Assembly (NCBI RefSeq): GCF_000400465.1 | Contig: NW_008806280.1 | Location: forward strand, 330,001-362,000 | Direction of reading: 5' to 3' | Length of the DNA: 32,000 nt | Origin: Wallemia ichthyophaga EXF-994 | Taxonomy: Eukaryota; Fungi; Basidiomycota | Part shown: piece after piece, positions 17,126 to 28,380 of the stretch | Layout of the letters: every line of letters begins with the position of its first letter | Numbering within the stretch: the stretch's first letter is position 1 | The notes under the pieces: generated by a model | Seen by the model: the letters and a program-made list of their open reading frames with translations, nothing else | The model's database searches: none | What the model was told of the DNA's origin: nothing | Program-made: the position numbers and the translations under genes

Positions 17126-17632
17126 TCATCCCCATGCGACTGATGTACTGTAATTAACTATGACGTGACCATCTGTACCGTAACATTTATAGAGATTTCC
17201 GATGCTGTCGTCTGGTGAAGGAGCAAAAGCTGAGTTGACGTAGCAGAAGACGGGACAATTAGAATTAGACAGTCCGCATTCTTTCCTGAGGAACTGAATA
17301 ACTGTAGAAAACTTATTTGAGTCTGATATCTTATAGAAATTCTGCTTCATTATCGGCGCTGCACCTATAGCTTTGAATCGTACAACCACCTTCCTGCCTT
17401 CTTTACGGCGATAAGCTTCTAATGCACGATGAGATGCTCCGATAACTCCATGCTCGTTATAGGCTGCCTCAATATCAGCGATATCATCAACGGCGCTGCG
17501 TTGGTTCTGCGTCGATGCAATTGACCGCGGCTGTGGACTTCCTATTGTGTCCAAGTTGGGTGAATTCTTAGGTGAGAATAAGGCCTCTGATGTTGGCAAT
17601 GGTGGCAGTGTTGGTGGCTCTCCGCCGCTCAT
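17126..17632 (-). CDS. ATG12: Ubiquitin-like autophagy protein Atg12
   Basis: VVVRFKAIGAAPIMKQ, VFCYVNSAFAPSPD and C-terminal NYSTSVAWG. First ATG at 17632. Confidence 0.95.
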   Translation of the reverse strand: MSGGEPPTLPPLPTSEALFSPKNSPNLDTIGSPQPRSIASTQNQRSAVDDIADIEAAYNEHGVIGASHRALEAYRRKEGRKVVVRFKAIGAAPIMKQNFYKISDSNKFSTVIQFLRKECGLSNSNCPVFCYVNSAFAPSPDDSIGNLYKCYGTDGHVIVNYSTSVAWG

Positions 17633-17733
17633 TAAGCTCTTGGTCGTTGGTGGAAGAGACGCAATTGAGGTAATCAGCACAATCAATAAACAAATAAGTC
17701 AAGACATTCAAATATTTACAAACAAGCTCCTGT

Positions 17734-20426
17734 TTAAATCGTTACTGTAACACAAGATGGTATGATACAACCATTCTGCTTCAATACAGCAATCAGCGTC
17801 AATGAGTTATCCACCAACTCGCCATCAATATCTCTCAGATTCGGTAATCCCACTATCAACTCCTCGTTCGAGATATAGTTGACGTATGCAGACCTCCACA
17901 CGGCCACCTCCTCATCATGCATACTCGTCTTGCCTTCCTCACCAAGATCCAGCCCCAGTCCTACTCCACGAGCTTTGCGTATCTTGCCCCCTAAATAAAT
18001 ATCTGCAGTGTCATTCGAGAAGACGTCAAAATTCTTGCCTATTACTTTGACAATGTCTACCATTTCACCCTCAATCTCCTCACCAGAGTAGCGACGCTTC
18101 GTGCGCACGTCGCAGTGCACCCAACTATCCAGATATGGTATCGCTATAGCTATAGCTCCATCCAGGTTCGTTCTCTTATTGAGTGTGTCGAGCGGAAGAT
18201 TCGCGCCAGGCGTGAATTCTGGTGTGTATATGTGGTGATTATGCACTTCTGTGTGGAATATTAGTGAATCTATTCAAATAATCGAAACAACTCAAATCAC
18301 CCACCTGCACATGACAACGTCCACAGAGCAATCTCGCCAACATCCAGTGACCAGGTCATGCCATCTTCAGCAAAGGCATCGAGATTGTTAGCATCATAAT
18401 GACTCGAACGCCTTTTGTTACGTCCACCTGACTCATTTGAGATAGACGAACGCCTTACACTCGTCCTTCTCGATCGAGGTTTGTATGAGACATCAGCCCC
18501 GCTCTCCTCATACATATCGTGCATGTCTGACTGGTAGCTAGTCCTCCTCGACTTGCTTGCTCCTTCCTGGTTATACTTGTAGTTGGAGTTGGAATTCTGG
18601 TTTTTATGTGGGAACTCAACAGGTCCTTCGTGTGCTTTAGGTGGAGTGATGAGACGGATTAGCTCGTCTACGCAGGTGAGATACATTCCTGAAGCCTCGA
18701 GATCGTTCCCATCTGTCTGACTAGGCGTCTGCGTCTGCGCTGCTAACTCCAACCCCACCTTGTTCAGCTGCACAGTGGGTTCTCCCAACACACTCCCCTT
18801 GATGCACCCCACTTGGCGATGCTGGTTCGCGTTACTGTCGAGACTAGAGCGACGACGCTGTTGCTCTACATTGCCGCCTCCCGTCACTGAGCTCCCTTTT
18901 CCTCCTCTCCTGACGATCAGTGGCGGCGACACTACACCGTGAGCGAGTGACTGGAGCACCACTACAGAGTTGGCGCGAATAGCTGTAGTGTACATCCCAG
19001 TCGGCAGCGCTCCCACAGGCGGCGTTGGCCAGTCTGATGGAACGTTTGGTAGTCTATCCTGGGCATACTCCGTGTCATACATCCAGATAATGAACGGATC
19101 CCAGTAATTGGCATCTGGAGTAAACGTAGCATTTCTCAGGTCAATACCCTCCTCATTGTTTATCTGATAATCACTACCTAATGGCCAGACAGCCGGTGTG
19201 CCAGTCACAGTGAGGTAGCGTGTCGACGATGTTTGAGACTTGGCTCTGTTATATAAGCTAACGAGACTACCGTGAAAAACGCAAATATCTTCATTTCGCT
19301 TTGGCTTTCTCTGCTTGGATGCTTTCGATATTATGTTCATATTTGGAAGTGAAAAACTGCCTTTGAAAGGGTTGCTCGATAGAAGCGATGGAATTATCAC
19401 TTGAGCATTGCAATTAGTTATTCTACGATCATCTGAGACTTCGCTGATGTGCAAATGCTTAGCTACCGCTTTCCCATGCATCATTCTGTTATTCGAGTTG
19501 TTGTCTGAAATGTCTGAGGTGTCGTCGTGTGAGTCTGATTTGTTAGAGTTTGGGGAAGAGGAGGGTGGCGTAAGCGGCATATTACCCGTTTGCGTTGCCT
19601 GGGTTACCTGGGAGGCCTGTGCTGGGTGTGATTGGAACTCTGTCCATTTCAAATCGCAATGGTGAGCTTCCCTGCTATTTCCAAGCTTCACTTCCACAGA
19701 TGGAGACAATTGTCCTAATGCATGAGATTGTCCGCTCTTCTTGTTGTTCATGTCGCTGTTCCAATTCTTGCCAATCAAACAAACTTGAGGAGGTGGAGCG
19801 ATGAATCTGTCATGTCAGCGCCTTCACCACACCAAACCACACCACACCTACCTCTTCTCATTCCCGTAACTCTTCTGTGCAGTCTGTGGTGTTGTAATTG
19901 AAATAATCTGCTCGCCAAAGTTCATGCGATGCGGTGCGTTGAGGAAGTTCTTTAGGGTGATAACGATGCGCGCACTAAGCTTTTCATCTTCTTGGTCGTT
20001 GTGACGGCTGACCTGTGCAGGGTGGTGTACCTGCTGCAAGTGCTGTTCCTGCTGCTCGTGCTGCGGTGGCAGTGGAGGAATAACGTTGGCAGGCTTAATG
20101 AAAGTATCTGAGGGTGCAACGACGCTAATGGAATGTCTGTTGGCGTTGCTCAGGCTGGCGAATGGGTGGCCAAAGTAACCAGATGGCGTCACCGGGGATT
20201 GTTGATCGACTGTGAAAGAGCTAAACGCTGAGCTTAAGGAAGGTACACTGCCACGATGCTTATTATACTTGTATTGTAGTGGCTGCTGAATATCCTCCGC
20301 CTCCACTTTAACTTCAGCCTCGGTTGCGCCTTCACCTGGACTAATTGATAAGGGATCATAGCCGTCGTACGACGTCGGTGGCTGTGCGTGATCTTCAATA
20401 CTGTAATTGCTGAAATTAAAGTCCAT
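17734..20426 (-). CDS. Fungal CSL (CBF1/Su(H)/LAG-1) family transcription factor (3 exons)
   Basis: Exons 20426-19852, 19806-18305 and 18248-17734 (introns 45 and 56 nt). AQKSYGNEKR|FIAPPP, YNRAKSQTSSTRYL, WDPFII, EPTVQLNKVGLE and C-terminal IPT-like VIGKNF...LIAVLKQNGCII. This joins three separate track ORFs. Confidence 0.9.
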
Positions 20427-20659
20427 CGTCGTTGTTGCTCAACCCGCCAATTAGTTTATTACTTCGTTTCCATCTTTCGGCGAGACGATTCTGAAACATT
20501 AATCTAGGCAATACAATAACTTAAGCCTTTTTTGATGGTGGATTTTATAAAGTATTTTGTTTTTTATATTTCTATATTCTACACTTGACTGCTTCTATCT
20601 GTGTTTCCTGGATATGTGTCACTCCCAGCAGCGTACCATTCCTAGCTACTTCTATTGCC

Positions 20660-22898
20660 CTAGCTGTCACCTTGATTATAAACCCTTCCAAGCCTACTCA
20701 AAGCCACCTAATCACTTGGTCAGATGAGCCTGTCTTAGATATTGATACTCACGTCATATGCCTCCATCAATGGTTCCACTTCCTTTGTCGTTGGCCTCAC
20801 TTTCTTCACTTGATGCTTAGCATTCTTCGTGTATCCCTTAAAGTATTTGGCTTCTTGCACTTCTACCAGCGTCCATGCTGTGCCAACCAATCCAGCTCGC
20901 GCTGTTCTACCGACCCTGTGGACATACTTGGGCATGTCAAGTGGTATGTCATAATTGATCACATTTTCAATACCCTGAACATCTATTCCTCTTGCAATTA
21001 CATCCGTTGACACCAACCTATTCATTTCATACGTCAGCATACGTCATTCTCTCTCAAAACACTCACATATCAACCTCGCCATCCTTAAACTTGGTAAGCA
21101 TCTTTTGCCTCTCTTGCGGTGAGAGATCACTGCTAAATGATGCCACTGTCGGTCCATTCCCCACTTGATCATTGAACAGTCGCAGAAGATGCATCAACCT
21201 CGTAGCACTCTCAACAGATTTCGTGAAACACAACGCCCTCTTTACACCCCTCTGGTAAAGCAAGTGCAGCAACATCAATGGTTTGTACGCCGTTTCGGAA
21301 ACTATCATACGTTCCTAGAAAGGAAATTGAGATTAGATTGACCTAAATTAATGTACTCCCAATATAGCATCTATAACTCACCTCTAATGTGGATGGAATC
21401 GCATAATCTTCCACCTTCTCGTTGCGAACAACGACGAACTTAGGATCGTTGAGATGCAAAGAGCGAATTTTTGATGGATCTGTTGTGAGTGTGGCTGAGA
21501 AAAGCATTTTTTGCACCTATTCTCAGTGAGCAGTGAAACGACAGAAAATTAAAATAAACTAACTCCTCGTTGTGGTCTTTCAAATGTCTCCATCAAATCG
21601 TGTTTGTTTGTACCACCCAATGCATCATGTGCATCTGTCCTTGGTGGTATTTTAATTGGTGTTGTTAATGCAATCTGAACTCTGTCTATCCACGATTGGA
21701 AAGACTGATTCATCAACCTGTCCGCTTCATCTATGACCTTGGAGGTATGTTGGCGGAGGGGTTATTTAAAAAGCACCAACTCACCAAAAACCTGAGATGC
21801 TGGACTGTGAAATTTGGGGTAGAGTTGATGTGATCGATAAGTCTACCCGGGGTTGCTATAAGTATGTCGACTTTAGAGCTGCCACCAGCAAAGCTTGAGG
21901 AGGTATTAGCTTGCGTACGAACTAATGAGATTTACCAACATTGTATCAGTTTGGCCAACGAGTTTGGCTTGTTCTTGTTGAAATGATTGCTGTCCAGTTA
22001 TCGTACCAATCTAGAGTATAGTGAGTAAATGTGTATAACAAAATCTCGCCAACTCGAATCCCACCTTGAGATCAGTGCCTTTTGCGAAAAGCTCAAATGT
22101 TTCTCGGACTTGAGAAACGAGATCGCGAGTGGGAAGAACGATAAGAGCTCTCAGACGTGTGACGATACGTCTTGAAAGAACTTCTACAATTGGTAGAGTG
22201 TACCCTAAAGTCTTTCCAGAGCCAGTTGGTGCAGATACGCAGATATCTCTTGGACTCTCAGCGGGATAAAGAGGGTGTCGTATACCATCATTCATGTCAC
22301 CTATGAGAAGTGGAATGGCAGCTAGTTGAACGGCAAAAAGGCTTTCAAAGCCGATTTGGATGAGACGATTGCTGAGTCTGCCACCTAAACCTAGAGTGTG
22401 GGCCTGGGTTGAAGGAAATGACTGATTTGCGTCTATCGAAATTTCATTTGCAAAGACATCAGGCAGACCGAGTTTCTTGAGATCTTCAGTTGAAGCTACG
22501 TTGAGATTCTGAGGTTCTGGGAAGGACAGCAACGGCAATTGAGGGGGTTGTTGAGGGATTTCCTGGGAAATCTCAGGGATATTGGGGATCTCAGGGTTTT
22601 CTGAGATTTCAGGCTTCTCAGGCTTTTCGATCTTCTCGTCGCGATCGCTGTCGCTACTATCACTGCTACTGCTTTCACTGCTGTCACTGCTATCACTATT
22701 ACTACTGCTGCTACTAATACCACGATCACCACCGCCAGATACCTTTGCATCCTGCTCACCGGGCTCAACTCTCCTTTTCTTCTTCTTAGGCGCAGCTGCT
22801 TGGTTTGCTTTCCTTCGTATCTTTTTCTTATTAAGATAGCGGAGTTTTGCGGCTGTTTTCTCCTTTTTGAGTGTGGGTGCGGGTGCTGCAGTGGTCAT
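20660..22898 (-). CDS. DBP6: DEAD-box RNA helicase Dbp6/DDX51 (multi-exon)
   Basis: Q motif [50 protein letters not shown] and [10 protein letters not shown] across short-intron exons. The last exon ends [15 protein letters not shown]. Confidence 0.92.
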
Positions 22899-24258: not shown

Positions 24259-26415
24259 TTATTTCTTATCAGTCAACTCCTCAACGCATTTCAAACCATC
24301 TAGCGCCTCTTTATTCAAATAGCCATGCTTAATGTTTTCTGAGAATCCTTCTGGAATATAGTTTCCTGCTGCATCTGGTACATTGAGATGCTCAGCCATC
24401 ATAGCAGCGATTGTAAACCTTGCATTCTTCTTACTGCTACTGCTAGCTTCCGCGATCTTTTGCCCATCCATATGCAATATCGCAAACCAACTAGCAACAC
24501 CGTCGAGATTGCGATCTGTCTCACCAAATTCCCAATTCAACTTGTTACCGAATATCTTATTTATAGCTGTAGACCAATGTCCTTGCACTTCTCCTCTATT
24601 GCGCTCTTCGAATTCCCTTTGTACTGCTGTGAGATGGCACTTTACGAATGGTCCCAAGAGCTCTATAAGCCACGATCGACTGATTCCAGGCTCTCTGTCA
24701 CGAAACACCGCTCCTATATATGCTTCCATCGCATCTGCTTTCGTTTTCATTGAGTGATGCTGTACCTGTGAATCTTGATTCTTCAATTGCGTCGACACAC
24801 GCAGCTTTGACGGCAGGCCGTACATTTCCGCAAAGTATGATAGTATATTACCATTAACAAGCCTGTTACGCAAGCTCACCATTCCACCCGGTCTCAGCTG
24901 CGGGTGCTGTACAAAGATTGCCTCAGTCGTATGCACTTCTAGCACTGCATCTCCTAGGAACTCTAGACGCTCGTTATCGAATGATGTGTAACCCTGATGT
25001 GTTTCATTGTTAGCTAGTTTGTATAACGACGTGTAAAAAACCACTCACTTCTGGATCTTGCATGACGTTGAGTGGTGGATTAAGAGATCTATGAGTGAGT
25101 ACCTCAAACAGCGACACCTCAGTCAAAGCTGGTAACGGTGGTGGGTATGATGATGGAAACTCAGGCTGTACCTCAGTCTTCATTTCGTCGGATATAGGCA
25201 GGAGTTTACCGTGATCTAGATCGTACCTCGACATAGGTCTGTTTGGATTGAATTTGCCTTCATTCAACAATCCCTCTATAAACTCTGTTTTGGCATCAAT
25301 CGAGTGACTTGACTGCCAGCGCAAATTCTTGAGTGGTGGGCCTGCTTCTTCCTCCCTCTTTCTCTTCCGTGAGAGCTCTTCAGCCTCCCTCTTTCTTGCA
25401 GCTTCATCTTCCTTGTCCATGATCATTTTAGCCTCTCCAATCTCCCTTAACTCCTTGAGCTCCTTTTTCAAACCCTCTTCGCGTTCCTTGTATGTCATAG
25501 CCTGTTGTTGCATCTCTGAGTCAGCTCTCTCATACTTCCTTTTGTACTTGTCAACTTTCTTGAGCGTATCAGCTTTCGCCTTCTCAGCCTGTTGTAACTT
25601 CTGCTTGTACTCCCACTCAGCTTTCTCAGCCTGTTTCTTGTATGTTTCAAGCTCGAGATGTACCTCATTTTTATGCTTTTCAGAATGAACTGTTTGATGT
25701 CCTTGCTCCGTCTCTGCTTTCTCAGTCTGCTTTCTTCCACGTTTTTGAAGTGCTTCAGTTTTGAACTCTTCAGATCTGGAGATGCTTCCATTCCTGCCTC
25801 GATGCGAGACTCCCTCAGACGAAGTATCAGGTTCCCCCGTTGAGTTATTATAATACGTTTTGATACTATCTGCAGCGGTGTTTTGCTCCTTTTGACTGCT
25901 TTTGGCTGCTTCTGCAGCTTGTGCTTCCAGGTCTGCAACGTTCGGCTTCATCTCGGGTTGCGCTGTTCCTTGAGATTCGACAATGGCGGTGATGTTCGGA
26001 GTGATCACATCATAAAGCCATCCTTTGAGCTTATCGAATCCCATTTCCTTGTAGATAGCACCAATGAATCTGCATGTACATTAGACAGATATCTTGCACC
26101 CCTAAACAACGCACGCTAGAAGTATATTCGCCTTGTCGCGTATTTCGGGCAATGCTTTCAGTTGAGTTATCTTCAGATCCTCGGATATTGACGCAAGCTT
26201 AGGCTCAGAGATAATACTATGCAAAACGCTATTGAGATCTGCTTGCGCGTTCTTCGTTAATACGTAGTCCACCTGCATTCTATCAGACCATTCTACGCAT
26301 AGAAACCCACACTCACCACAAAAGACTGCAGGAGCGATCTACCGAGTGTGATCAGGCCCTGGTCGATTGCCAAGCACTGTATCACTATTACGGGCGATAG
26401 TGGAGGCAGTGACAT
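24259..26415 (-). CDS. 670-aa RNase III protein: degenerate RNase III domain + charged coiled-coil linker + intact RNase III + dsRBD-like domain
   Basis: Exons 26415-26317, 26272-26115, 26069-25049 and 24993-24259 total 2013 nt in frame. Introns are 44, 45 and 55 nt, GT..AG with CTGAT, CTAAT and CTAAC branch sites. The C-terminal domain has LPAL..THRS, NERLEFLGDAVL and KADAMEAYIGA. dsRBD-like W..GQKIAEASSSSKKNARF. Confidence 0.85.
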
Positions 26416-26578
26416 CCTTAATGCTTCGCCGGTGGTGGTGGTGATGGTAGGTTCGAAGAGAAGGTCTGTTTTGTATAGAGCTGAGATTGGCGAAATCAAA
26501 ATTATTTATATATTTAAGAACTTCAGTTTAATTTAGAATAGAAAAGGGACGTTTTTCTATTTAAAAAAATAAAAATTG

Positions 26579-26658
26579 AACCCCTGACGGGAATTGCACC
26601 CGCGACCCTCTGCTATCCTGACCGGAGGCAGATACGCTAACTTCTACGCCACAAGGGT
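26579..26658 (-). tRNA. tRNA-Arg(CCG)-like gene with a 7-nt intron and atypical D and T loops
   Basis: Cloverleaf: acceptor ACCCTTG/CAGGGGT, D-stem GCGT/GCGT (with G-U pairs), anticodon stem TCTGC/GCAGA, loop CT-CCG-G[TCAGGAT]A and T-stem GCGGG/CCCGT. Downstream T-runs could act as a Pol III terminator. Confidence 0.75.
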
Positions 26659-27151: not shown

Positions 27152-28380
27152 CTATGTGAGAGTGTTCCTTATGGAATCTTTCTGCTGTTGATTGAGTGTC
27201 TTCGGTAGCTCGACATCCCAAACGACCCTCAAATCACCCTTCTTCTTTGCAGCATCCTTCTTGGAGATTGGCATGCCTTCACCATACTTCTTGGTGACAG
27301 AGCCAGGTTGTATTATACCGGAAGGTGGGTTGATTTCAATCAAACGACCATCGAGATGTCTTATCTTGAATGTCTTGCTACCGGTACCGCACATGGCATC
27401 GACCAAGCTGACCTTTTGGTGCACTTCCACGTCGTCGCCATCACGTTTGAATGTAGAGTGAGGTTTCTCTTCCACGACAAAGACTATATCCTGGAATTTA
27501 CCTTGACTAACTTCATTTCCTGAGGTGTTGAAACGAATTTTAGTACCCGCTTTCCATCCTGGCTTAACACTGAACTCCAGTATCTTATCCTCGCTCCTGC
27601 CTGAGAGATGCTTGCGTTGTATCTTGAGTTTCTTGTGCACGCCTGCGTAAAGGTCTTCTAAGGATATAGGCACGTTCTTGGTCCATTCTGAAGGACCCTC
27701 ATCTTTAGGAGGAGCTTTGGAGCGAGTGGAACGTGTGCTACCGCCCATACCAGGCATTCCACCGCCCATTCCACCACCACCCATGCCACCAGGCATGCCA
27801 CCGAATGAAGAGAATCCGCCAAAGTCATCGTCCATGGAAGAGCCAAAGCCGCTTCCCATACCACCCATTCCTCCCATTCCGCCTCCCATGCCACCTTTAC
27901 CGCCAAAGAGCATTTCAAAGATGTCCATTGGGTCACTGGCTTGGAAGCCACCTGGTCTACCGCCGCTGCTGGAGAAGTTGAATGATCCACCAGGGAAGGC
28001 ACCACCAGCATCGCCGAATCCTTCGAAGCCGGCGCCAGGTGATGGACCACCGCCACCTTTCAAGCCTTCTTCACCATCTGAAGGATGACGTTAGATTGGT
28101 TGATAGAGATGGAAGCAGACTCACATTGGTCGTAAATTGTTCTCTTGTTGGAGTCTGTCAATACCTCTGCAGCTTCAGACGCCTGCTTGAATTTTTCAGC
28201 AGCTTCGTCGGAGCCCTTGTTTCTGTGGAGGAGTATAATGAGTATACGCTGTTGGAGCGGGACTATAGCCACTCACCTATCTGGGTGGTACTTGAGAGCT
28301 GCCTTCTTGTAAGCCTTCTTTATTTCGTCTTCGCTAGCACTTTTGTCTACGCCTAGTAGTTTGTAGTAGTCTGCACCCAT
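27152..28380 (-). CDS. SIS1: Class B (type II) Hsp40 J-protein, Sis1-like
   Basis: [16 protein letters not shown]|RNK J-domain over two short introns, G/F- and G/M-rich regions with DIFEMLF, and [27 protein letters not shown]. Confidence 0.92.

Follow-up and report, generated by a model that had tools for sequence, protein, structure and literature searches.

To cleave double-stranded RNA (dsRNA), a ribonuclease III (RNase III) domain has to pair with another such domain, and the enzymes that carry these domains are classified by the number of nuclease domains per chain and by the way in which these pair. Class 1 and class 2 enzymes have a single domain and act as homodimers, whereas class 3 and class 4 enzymes have two active domains that pair within the chain. 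The gene described here lies on the minus strand of a 32,000-nucleotide (nt) stretch of DNA from the halophilic basidiomycete Wallemia ichthyophaga (Wallemiomycetes); this whole stretch is referred to below as the window and has a guanine-plus-cytosine (GC) content of 48%. At positions 24259..26415, the window encodes a protein of 670 amino acids (aa) that appears to join, in one chain, a dead RNase III domain at its N-terminus and an intact RNase III domain near its C-terminus. This arrangement had been proposed in an initial annotation made from the sequence alone, and it was borne out here by sequence, profile and predicted-structure evidence. The dead-twin architecture is apparently undescribed in the literature that we searched, in which nothing relevant was found for Wallemia in combination with RNase III, Dicer or Argonaute.

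Several described systems share parts of this layout. In the yeast class-2 enzyme Rnt1p, the N-terminal domain has roles in nuclear localisation and in the interaction with other factors (Nicholson review, PMC3867540), and Lamontagne et al., as cited there, attributed to it a dimerisation signal that is required for efficient cleavage. Drosha and Dicer contain two RNase III domains in cis followed by a dsRNA-binding domain (dsRBD), which is also the order of the Wallemia protein; however, their two domains, both of them active, dimerise within the chain, whereas the first Wallemia domain lacks all four catalytic acids. The linker between the domains is also much longer in Wallemia and partly disordered, and no Pfam families corresponding to PAZ, helicase, platform or Drosha central domains were found in the protein at an expectation value (E) <=1. 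In trypanosome editosomes, the combination of KREN1-3 with KREPB4/5 brings together active and degenerate RNase III domains, for which single-strand cleavage has been proposed (PMC3867540). There, the domains reside on separate polypeptides of a large mitochondrial complex and are accompanied by zinc-finger and PUF modules, whereas in the Wallemia protein, which is probably nuclear, they are in cis and are followed by a dsRBD-like domain.

On the evidence of sequence and structure prediction, residues 1-120 (25967..26415, minus strand, across introns 1 and 2) form an RNase III domain that has degenerated. The initial annotation had aligned the N-terminal ~110 aa with the C-terminal RNase III domain of the same protein through a series of paired motifs, and all of these motifs fell within the alignment that hhalign produced between an N-domain profile, built from three Wallemia sequences, and a C-domain profile (95 columns, E 1.6e-5, probability 79%). 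A BLASTP comparison of the two domains recovered the last paired motif alone (E 6e-5). By PDB alignment and numbering, Q19, I22, R26, N82 and L85 of the N-domain align with E434, E437, D441, D513 and E516 of the C-domain. The proposed loss of all four catalytic acids from the N-domain (E to I, D to R, D to N and E to L), with all of them kept in the C-domain, was thereby confirmed at exactly the expected positions, namely I22, R26, N82 and L85. Non-catalytic residues were also found at these positions in W. mellicola (M, K, N, L), in W. hederae, in the Wallemia contig L002, in a far more diverged, AT-rich relative represented by contig L004 (I, Q, N, L) and in a paralogue that is described below.

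Profile searches related the N-domain to RNase III sequences at modest scores. When residues 1-136 were scanned alone, Pfam returned PF14622 (Ribonucleas_3_3) at E 3e-6 and 27.8 bits, which is under the curated cut-off of 35 bits, and the W. mellicola N-domain gave a weak match to the mL44-type degenerate family PF22935 (E 8e-5). A PDB profile search with the N-domain profile identified the RNase III of T. maritima (1o0w, E 2e-6). An exhaustive hmmsearch of 1.84 billion representative proteins with the same profile yielded 16 matches at E<=1e-3; four were Wallemia proteins or fragments, and the other 12 were RNase III proteins (eight recognised by Pfam and four by reading of the sequence). The canonical active-site motif was present in 11 of these 12, and the four judged by sequence carried canonical NERLEFLGD and EALIGA-type motifs. 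For six of the eight proteins scanned with Pfam, the best-matching stretch overlapped the strongest Pfam-mapped RNase III domain. In protein P0078, the best stretch fell on a second domain that is marked in Pfam only by the mL44-type model, and in protein P0085 it was an upstream region unmarked by Pfam. No N-domain of the Wallemia kind was detected in this search outside Wallemia and its AT-rich relative.

The predicted structure of the N-domain pointed in the same direction. An AlphaFold2 model of residues 1-136 had a predicted local distance difference test score (pLDDT) of 83 and a predicted template modelling score (pTM) of 0.75, and because the input alignment consisted of the three Wallemia sequences only, this model was unbiased by RNase III sequences. 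In a Foldseek comparison with the PDB, all of the 50 best matches listed belonged to the RNase III family (query TM-score, TMq, 0.64-0.70), which agrees with the RNase III fold that had been suggested for these residues. Examples are 1jfz (TMq 0.64, with a root-mean-square deviation (rmsd) of 2.2 Å over 110 columns) and 2nug (TMq 0.70), and the list included the Aquifex, Campylobacter, Thermotoga and E. coli enzymes, mL44, yeast Dcr1, Drosha and Dicer. Within the AlphaFold2 model of the full-length protein (mean pLDDT 79, pTM 0.50), the N-domain was predicted with a pLDDT of 83-97.

The match to mL44 chains (for example 7o9m_c, TMq 0.63) recalls the mitoribosomal proteins mL44 and mL57, in which dead RNase III folds serve as structural modules. 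These are, however, separate mitochondrial proteins without an active domain, whereas the Wallemia protein has an active domain and a KRKR motif, and no evident presequence. A reading of the protein as a mitoribosomal component of this type was rejected on the grounds of its catalytically intact C-domain and the presence of the KRKR motif.

The second RNase III domain (aa 396-545; 24637..25141, minus strand, across intron 3) contains the motifs NERLEFLGD (433-441) and KADAMEAY (511-518). Pfam matched residues 407-525 to PF14622 (E 1.8e-23, 83.5 bits; cut-off 35) and to PF00636 (E 2.6e-21, 76.8 bits; cut-off 27). The domain keeps E434, E437, D441, D513 and E516 together with KADxxEAYIGA, and the motif columns were near-invariant in a 45-sequence alignment. 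Its signature helix, NERLEFLGDAVLE, is fully canonical, and nothing in that sequence suggests an adaptation to an unlike partner. Downstream of the nuclease domain, aa 566-629 (24385..24576, minus strand) are predicted by AlphaFold2 to adopt an alpha-beta-beta-beta-alpha fold that we describe as dsRBD-like; A617 and A622 occupy near-invariant alignment columns within its dsRBD consensus stretch SKKxAE..AA, and Pfam dsrm gave no match in the protein even at E<=5. The chain ends in a C-terminal tail (aa 630-670; 24262..24384, minus strand) modelled as short helices and one strand. Judged from the sequence and the model, the C-terminal module, made up of a conserved segment before the nuclease domain, the nuclease domain itself and the dsRBD-like unit, carries the sole competent active site of the chain.

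The nearest solved relative of this module, both by sequence (E ~1e-15) and, for matches that comprise an RNase III domain and a dsRBD, by fold (target TM-score, TMt, ~0.6), is Rnt1p (5t16/4oog). The best PDB sequence match of the C-domain was Rnt1p 5t16 (E 8.9e-16), and Foldseek aligned the full-length model with the RNase III domain and dsRBD of Rnt1p (5t16/4oog) over ~242 columns at a TMt of 0.57-0.61, the highest TM-scores among matches of that kind. The likeness to Rnt1p and Pac1 extends to an N-terminal extension that is set apart from the nuclease domain, to the PPxLP motif that precedes this domain and to a signal that probably targets the protein to the nucleus. Sequence similarity to these enzymes is nevertheless no higher than to bacterial RNase III, and the C-domain matched Drosha RIIIDb (E 2e-15) as well as it matched Rnt1p. 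The Wallemia chain also differs from Rnt1p and Pac1 in carrying a dead RNase III-fold domain in addition to the single active one, in the ~270-aa linker with a 105-residue helix that separates the two, and in a dsRBD-like domain too diverged for the Pfam model. Additionally, the N-terminal domain of Rnt1p, PF18497, is absent from the Wallemia protein (no match at E<=1, whereas the yeast homologue P0017 matched at E 2.7e-15), and a dead RNase III fold stands there instead. Among the 40 best domain matches listed, the N-domain profile matched the yeast protein on its nuclease domain (230-341) and not on residues 74-153.

The segments between the two domains differ in predicted order. The first part of the linker (aa 121-213; 25688..25966, minus strand) is mostly predicted disordered, with pLDDT <50 at 122-133 and 143-214 and one low-confidence helix at 131-155, and its length and sequence differ among species. 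It is followed by a long K/E/R-rich segment (aa 214-318; 25373..25687, minus strand) that AlphaFold2 modelled as one helix at a pLDDT of ~90; this helix, which is shorter in the orthologues, may be a coiled coil or a single alpha-helix spacer. Just past it, an RKRKR motif (aa 320-324; 25355..25369, minus strand) is kept as K/R-KRKR in all Wallemia orthologues and, going by the motif, is likely a nuclear localisation signal. A conserved ordered segment (about aa 336-395; 25142..25321, minus strand; pLDDT 81-93; ordered at 340-395 in the full-length model), which is kept in the orthologues and in the paralogue, leads into the nuclease domain.

The two domains are brought together by a gene of four exons, which assemble in frame into a coding sequence of 2013 nt with 670 codons and a stop codon at 24259-24261. 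Exon 1 (26317..26415; aa 1-33) begins with the ATG at 26415, a start shared by the orthologues, and ends in phase 0 after LGRSLLQSFV; exon 2 (26115..26272; aa 34-86) ends in phase 2; exon 3 (25049..26069) encodes aa 86-426; and exon 4 (24259..24993) encodes aa 427-670 and the stop. The three intervening introns, like the exons on the minus strand, are all of the GT..AG type: intron 1 (26273..26316) has 44 nt (GTGAGT..CAG), intron 2 (26070..26114) has 45 nt (GTGCGT..CAG) and intron 3 (24994..25048) has 55 nt (GTGAGT..CAG), and the frame runs into a stop if the last of these is retained. In contig L002, all three positions are likewise occupied by introns (43, 45 and 47 nt), which have diverged in sequence, and the spliced product has 612 aa, and the position and phase of intron 2 are the same in L004 as well.

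These junctions agree exactly with those given in the initial annotation, and its observation that a mechanical listing of open reading frames (ORFs) splits the locus into unrelated-looking pieces was reproduced (68, 58, 344 and 261 aa). Its description of the gene as hidden did not hold, as the same model is already present in NCBI as a 670-aa W. ichthyophaga 'hypothetical protein' (P0001; 99% identity, 100% coverage, gene span 2158 nt), though without mention of the second domain. The N-terminal segment is also fused to the RNase III domain in the W. hederae model (638 aa) and in that of W. mellicola, which has 593 aa and the name 'ribonuclease III'. The splicing is thus supported by comparative evidence and independent annotation, and not by reads.

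The dead domain was found in W. ichthyophaga, W. hederae, W. mellicola, L002 and L004, with dead residues in each. Between the window gene and L002, the ratio of nonsynonymous to synonymous substitution rates (dN/dS) was 0.06 in the active domain, 0.19 in the N-domain and ~0.2 in the linker, and the N-domain value indicates purifying selection, so that the dead domain is being maintained and is not decaying. The L004 orthologue (2190-4274 of contig k119_77524, ENA metagenome assembly ERZ27248811; ~30% GC) encodes a dead N-domain reading NFIRIGQIIL .. KSNALLCFITAIKEE, with the same phase-2 intron after 'LL' and apparently without an intron at the intron-1 position. A Questin_oxidase gene comes next after this orthologue, as it does in L002, so that local synteny is kept between the two. 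It is highly improbable that the N-terminal exons lie outside the mature mRNA or that the domain is a non-functional, decaying relic. The Pfam score of the N-domain, 27.8 against a gathering score of 35 bits, counts for such a reading; however, the domain is present in three species-level annotations, the splice sites are canonical and their positions recur in L002 (all three introns) and L004 (intron 2), the dN/dS is low, the fold is confidently predicted and the domain is kept even in the 30%-GC relative.

The initial annotation had also stated that it recognised no such architecture in fungi. This stood as far as the profile search is concerned, in which no such N-domain appeared beyond the Wallemia lineage, whereas the N-termini of other basidiomycete Rnt1 proteins were not compared directly. 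Named basidiomycete Rnt1 proteins (Cryptococcus, Ustilago, Agaricomycotina) were not among the 120 listed of 5691 matches to the Wallemia profile, which were mostly bacterial RNase III. A word-indexed search with the full-length protein, in which the K/E-rich linker dominated the candidates, returned Wallemia proteins and a few Drosha-like matches. A structurally equivalent N-domain that has diverged in sequence may occur elsewhere, for example in the Rnt1 of other basidiomycetes.

W. ichthyophaga has a second tandem RNase III, P0016, which is 346 aa long as annotated and 41% identical to the window protein. The annotated model begins partway through the N-domain, the rest of which is present upstream of this start; MSIISLDKYFEAAVLPPLSPSIIVQCLEQEKWLVRIGEGLLNAFL is encoded there, and a FIGAIYRELSHDKLVKWLHDV segment follows. 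The nuclease domain is intact and the chain ends directly after it, leaving the paralogue without a dsRBD. ORF fragments of this paralogue from other Wallemia species start with FIGAINREL. At the P0016 locus (L001 3753-5173, GCA_004917865.1), the annotated model omits exon 1 (MSIISLDKYFEAAVLPPLSPSIIVQCLEQEKWLVRIGEGLLNAFL) and begins within exon 2, and the position that corresponds to the intron-2 acceptor of the main gene reads CAT instead of CAG in this strain. The annotated acceptor lies 30 nt downstream and entails the in-frame loss of the conserved FIGAIYRELS; alternative 3' splicing, use of a non-canonical acceptor or an error in the sequence could account for this.

With two such proteins in one organism, heteromers have to be considered, in which the window protein would act with the P0016-type enzyme through mixed pairs of their C-domains (C1:C2) or through N:C pairs, with differing substrate ranges. 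The two paralogues have the N-domain, the pre-domain segment and the intact nuclease domain in common, the paralogue by itself has no dsRNA-binding domain, and its fragments are present in other Wallemia species, all of which would suit such a partnership. Each protein could, however, be self-sufficient, and RNase III enzymes without a dsRBD, such as Mini-III, are active as homodimers; altogether we consider heteromers of the two paralogues unlikely. In Cryptococcus neoformans, the Rnt1-related, PAZ-less, non-Dicer RNase III Rde3 is required for the production of endogenous small interfering RNA (PMC6643885). A single RNase III domain is described for Rde3 (PMC6643885). A basidiomycete enzyme of this type can thus serve RNA silencing and not rRNA processing alone, and one of the two Wallemia paralogues might have a silencing-related role.

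The paralogue also carries information about the origin of the dead domain. Intron 1 of the window gene, in phase 0 between LGRSLLQSFV and V, shares its alignment column and phase with an intron that interrupts the paralogue's catalytic domain, between LGDTVLETIV and T. Since there are ~360 possible codon-phase sites in the domain, this agreement is unlikely by chance. The dead domain probably arose by an internal duplication of the nuclease domain that preceded the separation of the two Wallemia paralogues. Sequence similarity alone is silent on this matter: bacterial RNase III domains scored 30-44 bits against the N-domain profile, as high as or higher than the C-domain of the paralogue (30 bits) and that of the window protein, and the idea that the N-domain is closest in sequence to its own C-domain was rejected for this reason. 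It is the intron position alone that points to duplication.

The combination of dead and active domains may have arisen more than once, as P0078 and P0085 also contain such domains in one chain. Both are uncharacterised proteins encoded on Logan contigs of AT-rich organisms. In P0078 (542 aa), an active domain (YERLEFLGDS..EDVFESFIGA) precedes a dead one (NERLNFLGNS..EQLFCSFVAA), and there are two Pfam dsRBD stretches, of which the one mapped is downstream of the dead domain. P0085 (805 aa) contains several degenerate repeats and a single active domain at its C-terminus.

The reading that we favour, to which we would give slightly less than an even chance, is that the window protein is the Wallemia counterpart of Rnt1/Pac1 and works as a homodimer of its C-terminal domains, with the dead domain as an accessory module. 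It would be a nuclear class-2 RNase III of W. ichthyophaga in which a dead RNase III fold replaces the usual fungal N-terminal domain. The C-terminal domains of two chains would pair to form the canonical two-site cleavage valley, and the homodimer would cut both strands of stem-loops in the precursors of ribosomal (rRNA), small nucleolar (snoRNA) and small nuclear RNAs. The dead domain, held on a long flexible and helical tether, may pair with its equivalent in the second chain or hold RNA or partner proteins, an accessory role that would parallel the dimerisation signal of the Rnt1p N-terminal domain. The fully canonical signature helix in the C-domain fits this reading, as do the apparent absence of any other Rnt1-type enzyme from Wallemia and the precedent of N-terminal dimerisation in Rnt1p. 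Enzymes of the Rnt1p/Pac1 class are nuclear or nucleolar and cleave AGNN-capped stem-loops in rRNA and snoRNA precursors; for the Wallemia protein, the conserved KRKR motif suggests that the role is probably nuclear. No canonical Rnt1 (PF18497 plus dsrm) from Wallemia was present among the matches at E<=1e-8 in a word-indexed search, though yeast Rnt1p was present there.

Several points weigh against the C-domain homodimer. The C:C pairing is assumed by carry-over from class 1 and class 2 enzymes, and the failure to find a separate canonical Rnt1 or Dicer in Wallemia comes from word-indexed searches only. Neither the length nor the composition of the linker is constant, and in the paralogue it is acidic, so that a conserved parallel coiled coil is not evident. 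RNase III domains dimerise through a ball-and-socket interface, and the residue that we take to be the 'ball', from the Aquifex structure, is F438 in the C-domain, whereas the N-domains have differing, polar residues there (T, T, D, S, R, R). This makes a canonical N:N dimer doubtful, as neither ball-and-socket contact would be present in it, while one of the two would be retained in an N:C pair.

The latter point also bears on a different arrangement, the main proposal of the initial annotation, in which the active C-domain would have a dead N-domain as its partner, either that of the same chain or, by a swap, that of a second chain, and the resulting pseudo-heterodimer would cut one strand per binding event. 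The order of the domains (RNase III, RNase III, dsRBD) is that of Drosha and Dicer, and the N-domain retains the LG and AF(I/V)GA helix motifs that pack at and near the RNase III dimer interface, while its polar, variable 'ball' residue disfavours the canonical N:N dimer. The change of the acidic cluster to neutral or basic residues (R, K or Q at the D44 position) is what would be expected of a site that holds a strand but does not cut it, and the layout of dead and active domains is common to both Wallemia paralogues. There is also precedent, as dsRNA is nicked by heterodimers of E. coli RNase III in which one subunit is dead (PMC3867540) and the KREN nucleases of editosomes have been proposed to pair with the dead KREPB4/5 (PMC3867540). 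On the other side, Foldseek aligned the full-length model with Drosha (6lxd) over 681 columns at a TMq of 0.19 and an rmsd of 18 Å, no better than a one-domain match, so that the AlphaFold2 monomer shows no Drosha-like arrangement, although this is weak evidence and no refutation of the pairing. The pTM of 0.50 is consistent with independent modules, and the ~270-aa linker is poorly conserved. Furthermore, if these are the sole class-2 RNase III enzymes of Wallemia, the processing of rRNA and snoRNA must tolerate the loss of double-strand cleavage. We regard a nickase of this kind as possible, if doubtful, and a role of the dead domain as a dimerisation or substrate-selection module, the alternative offered in the initial annotation, as at least as likely. 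The more general proposition, that Wallemia, a free-living fungus, has swapped a homodimeric Rnt1-type RNase III for dead/active pairs acting as natural single-site dsRNA nickases, whether in cis or with swapped chains, appears rather unlikely.

Other features were noted in the vicinity of the gene. A tRNA-Arg(CCG) gene with a 7-nt anticodon-loop intron (26578-26658, minus strand) shares the strand of the RNase III gene and lies ~160 nt upstream of its start codon; the tRNA gene was matched by the Rfam tRNA model at 46 bits, and ARAGORN named its anticodon once introns were allowed, but not under its default bacterial settings. The next gene upstream (27152-28063, minus strand, and beyond) encodes a DnaJ/Hsp40 protein with a long Gly/Met/Phe-rich region, for which the NCBI model has 371 aa with DnaJ and DnaJ_C domains. 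On the other side, an NCBI model of 1474 aa at ~17126-22898 (minus strand; L003 6519-8158), with the Pfam domains ResIII/DEAD/Helicase_C and LAG1-DNAbind, is an apparent fusion of two genes, a DEAD-box RNA helicase (ORFs 22011-22898 and 20735-21040) and, downstream of it, a CSL/LAG1-type DNA-binding protein. This neighbour was considered as a candidate Dicer and rejected, since it consists of a DEAD-box helicase followed by a CSL/LAG1-type gene.

The gene model itself was already available in NCBI, and what appears to be new is the recognition of the second, dead domain. With its class-2 catalytic module and a dead second domain in cis, conserved across the lineage and in two paralogues, the Wallemia enzyme falls between the classes into which RNase III enzymes are divided, and it raises the question of an intermediate between the homodimeric and the intramolecular enzymes. 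It also offers a small natural system for asking what purpose a retained pseudo-nuclease domain serves, be it dimerisation, strand holding or regulation. Should the dead domain be only an accessory, the Wallemia protein would represent a modest, lineage-specific variation on Rnt1. If, in contrast, the active domain has the dead one as its partner, the enzyme would act as a compact dsRNA nickase of natural origin, possibly useful as a tool, and, if such enzymes have replaced the canonical Rnt1-type RNase III, nuclear RNA processing in Wallemia would proceed by single-strand nicks or by two independent binding events instead of concerted double cuts.

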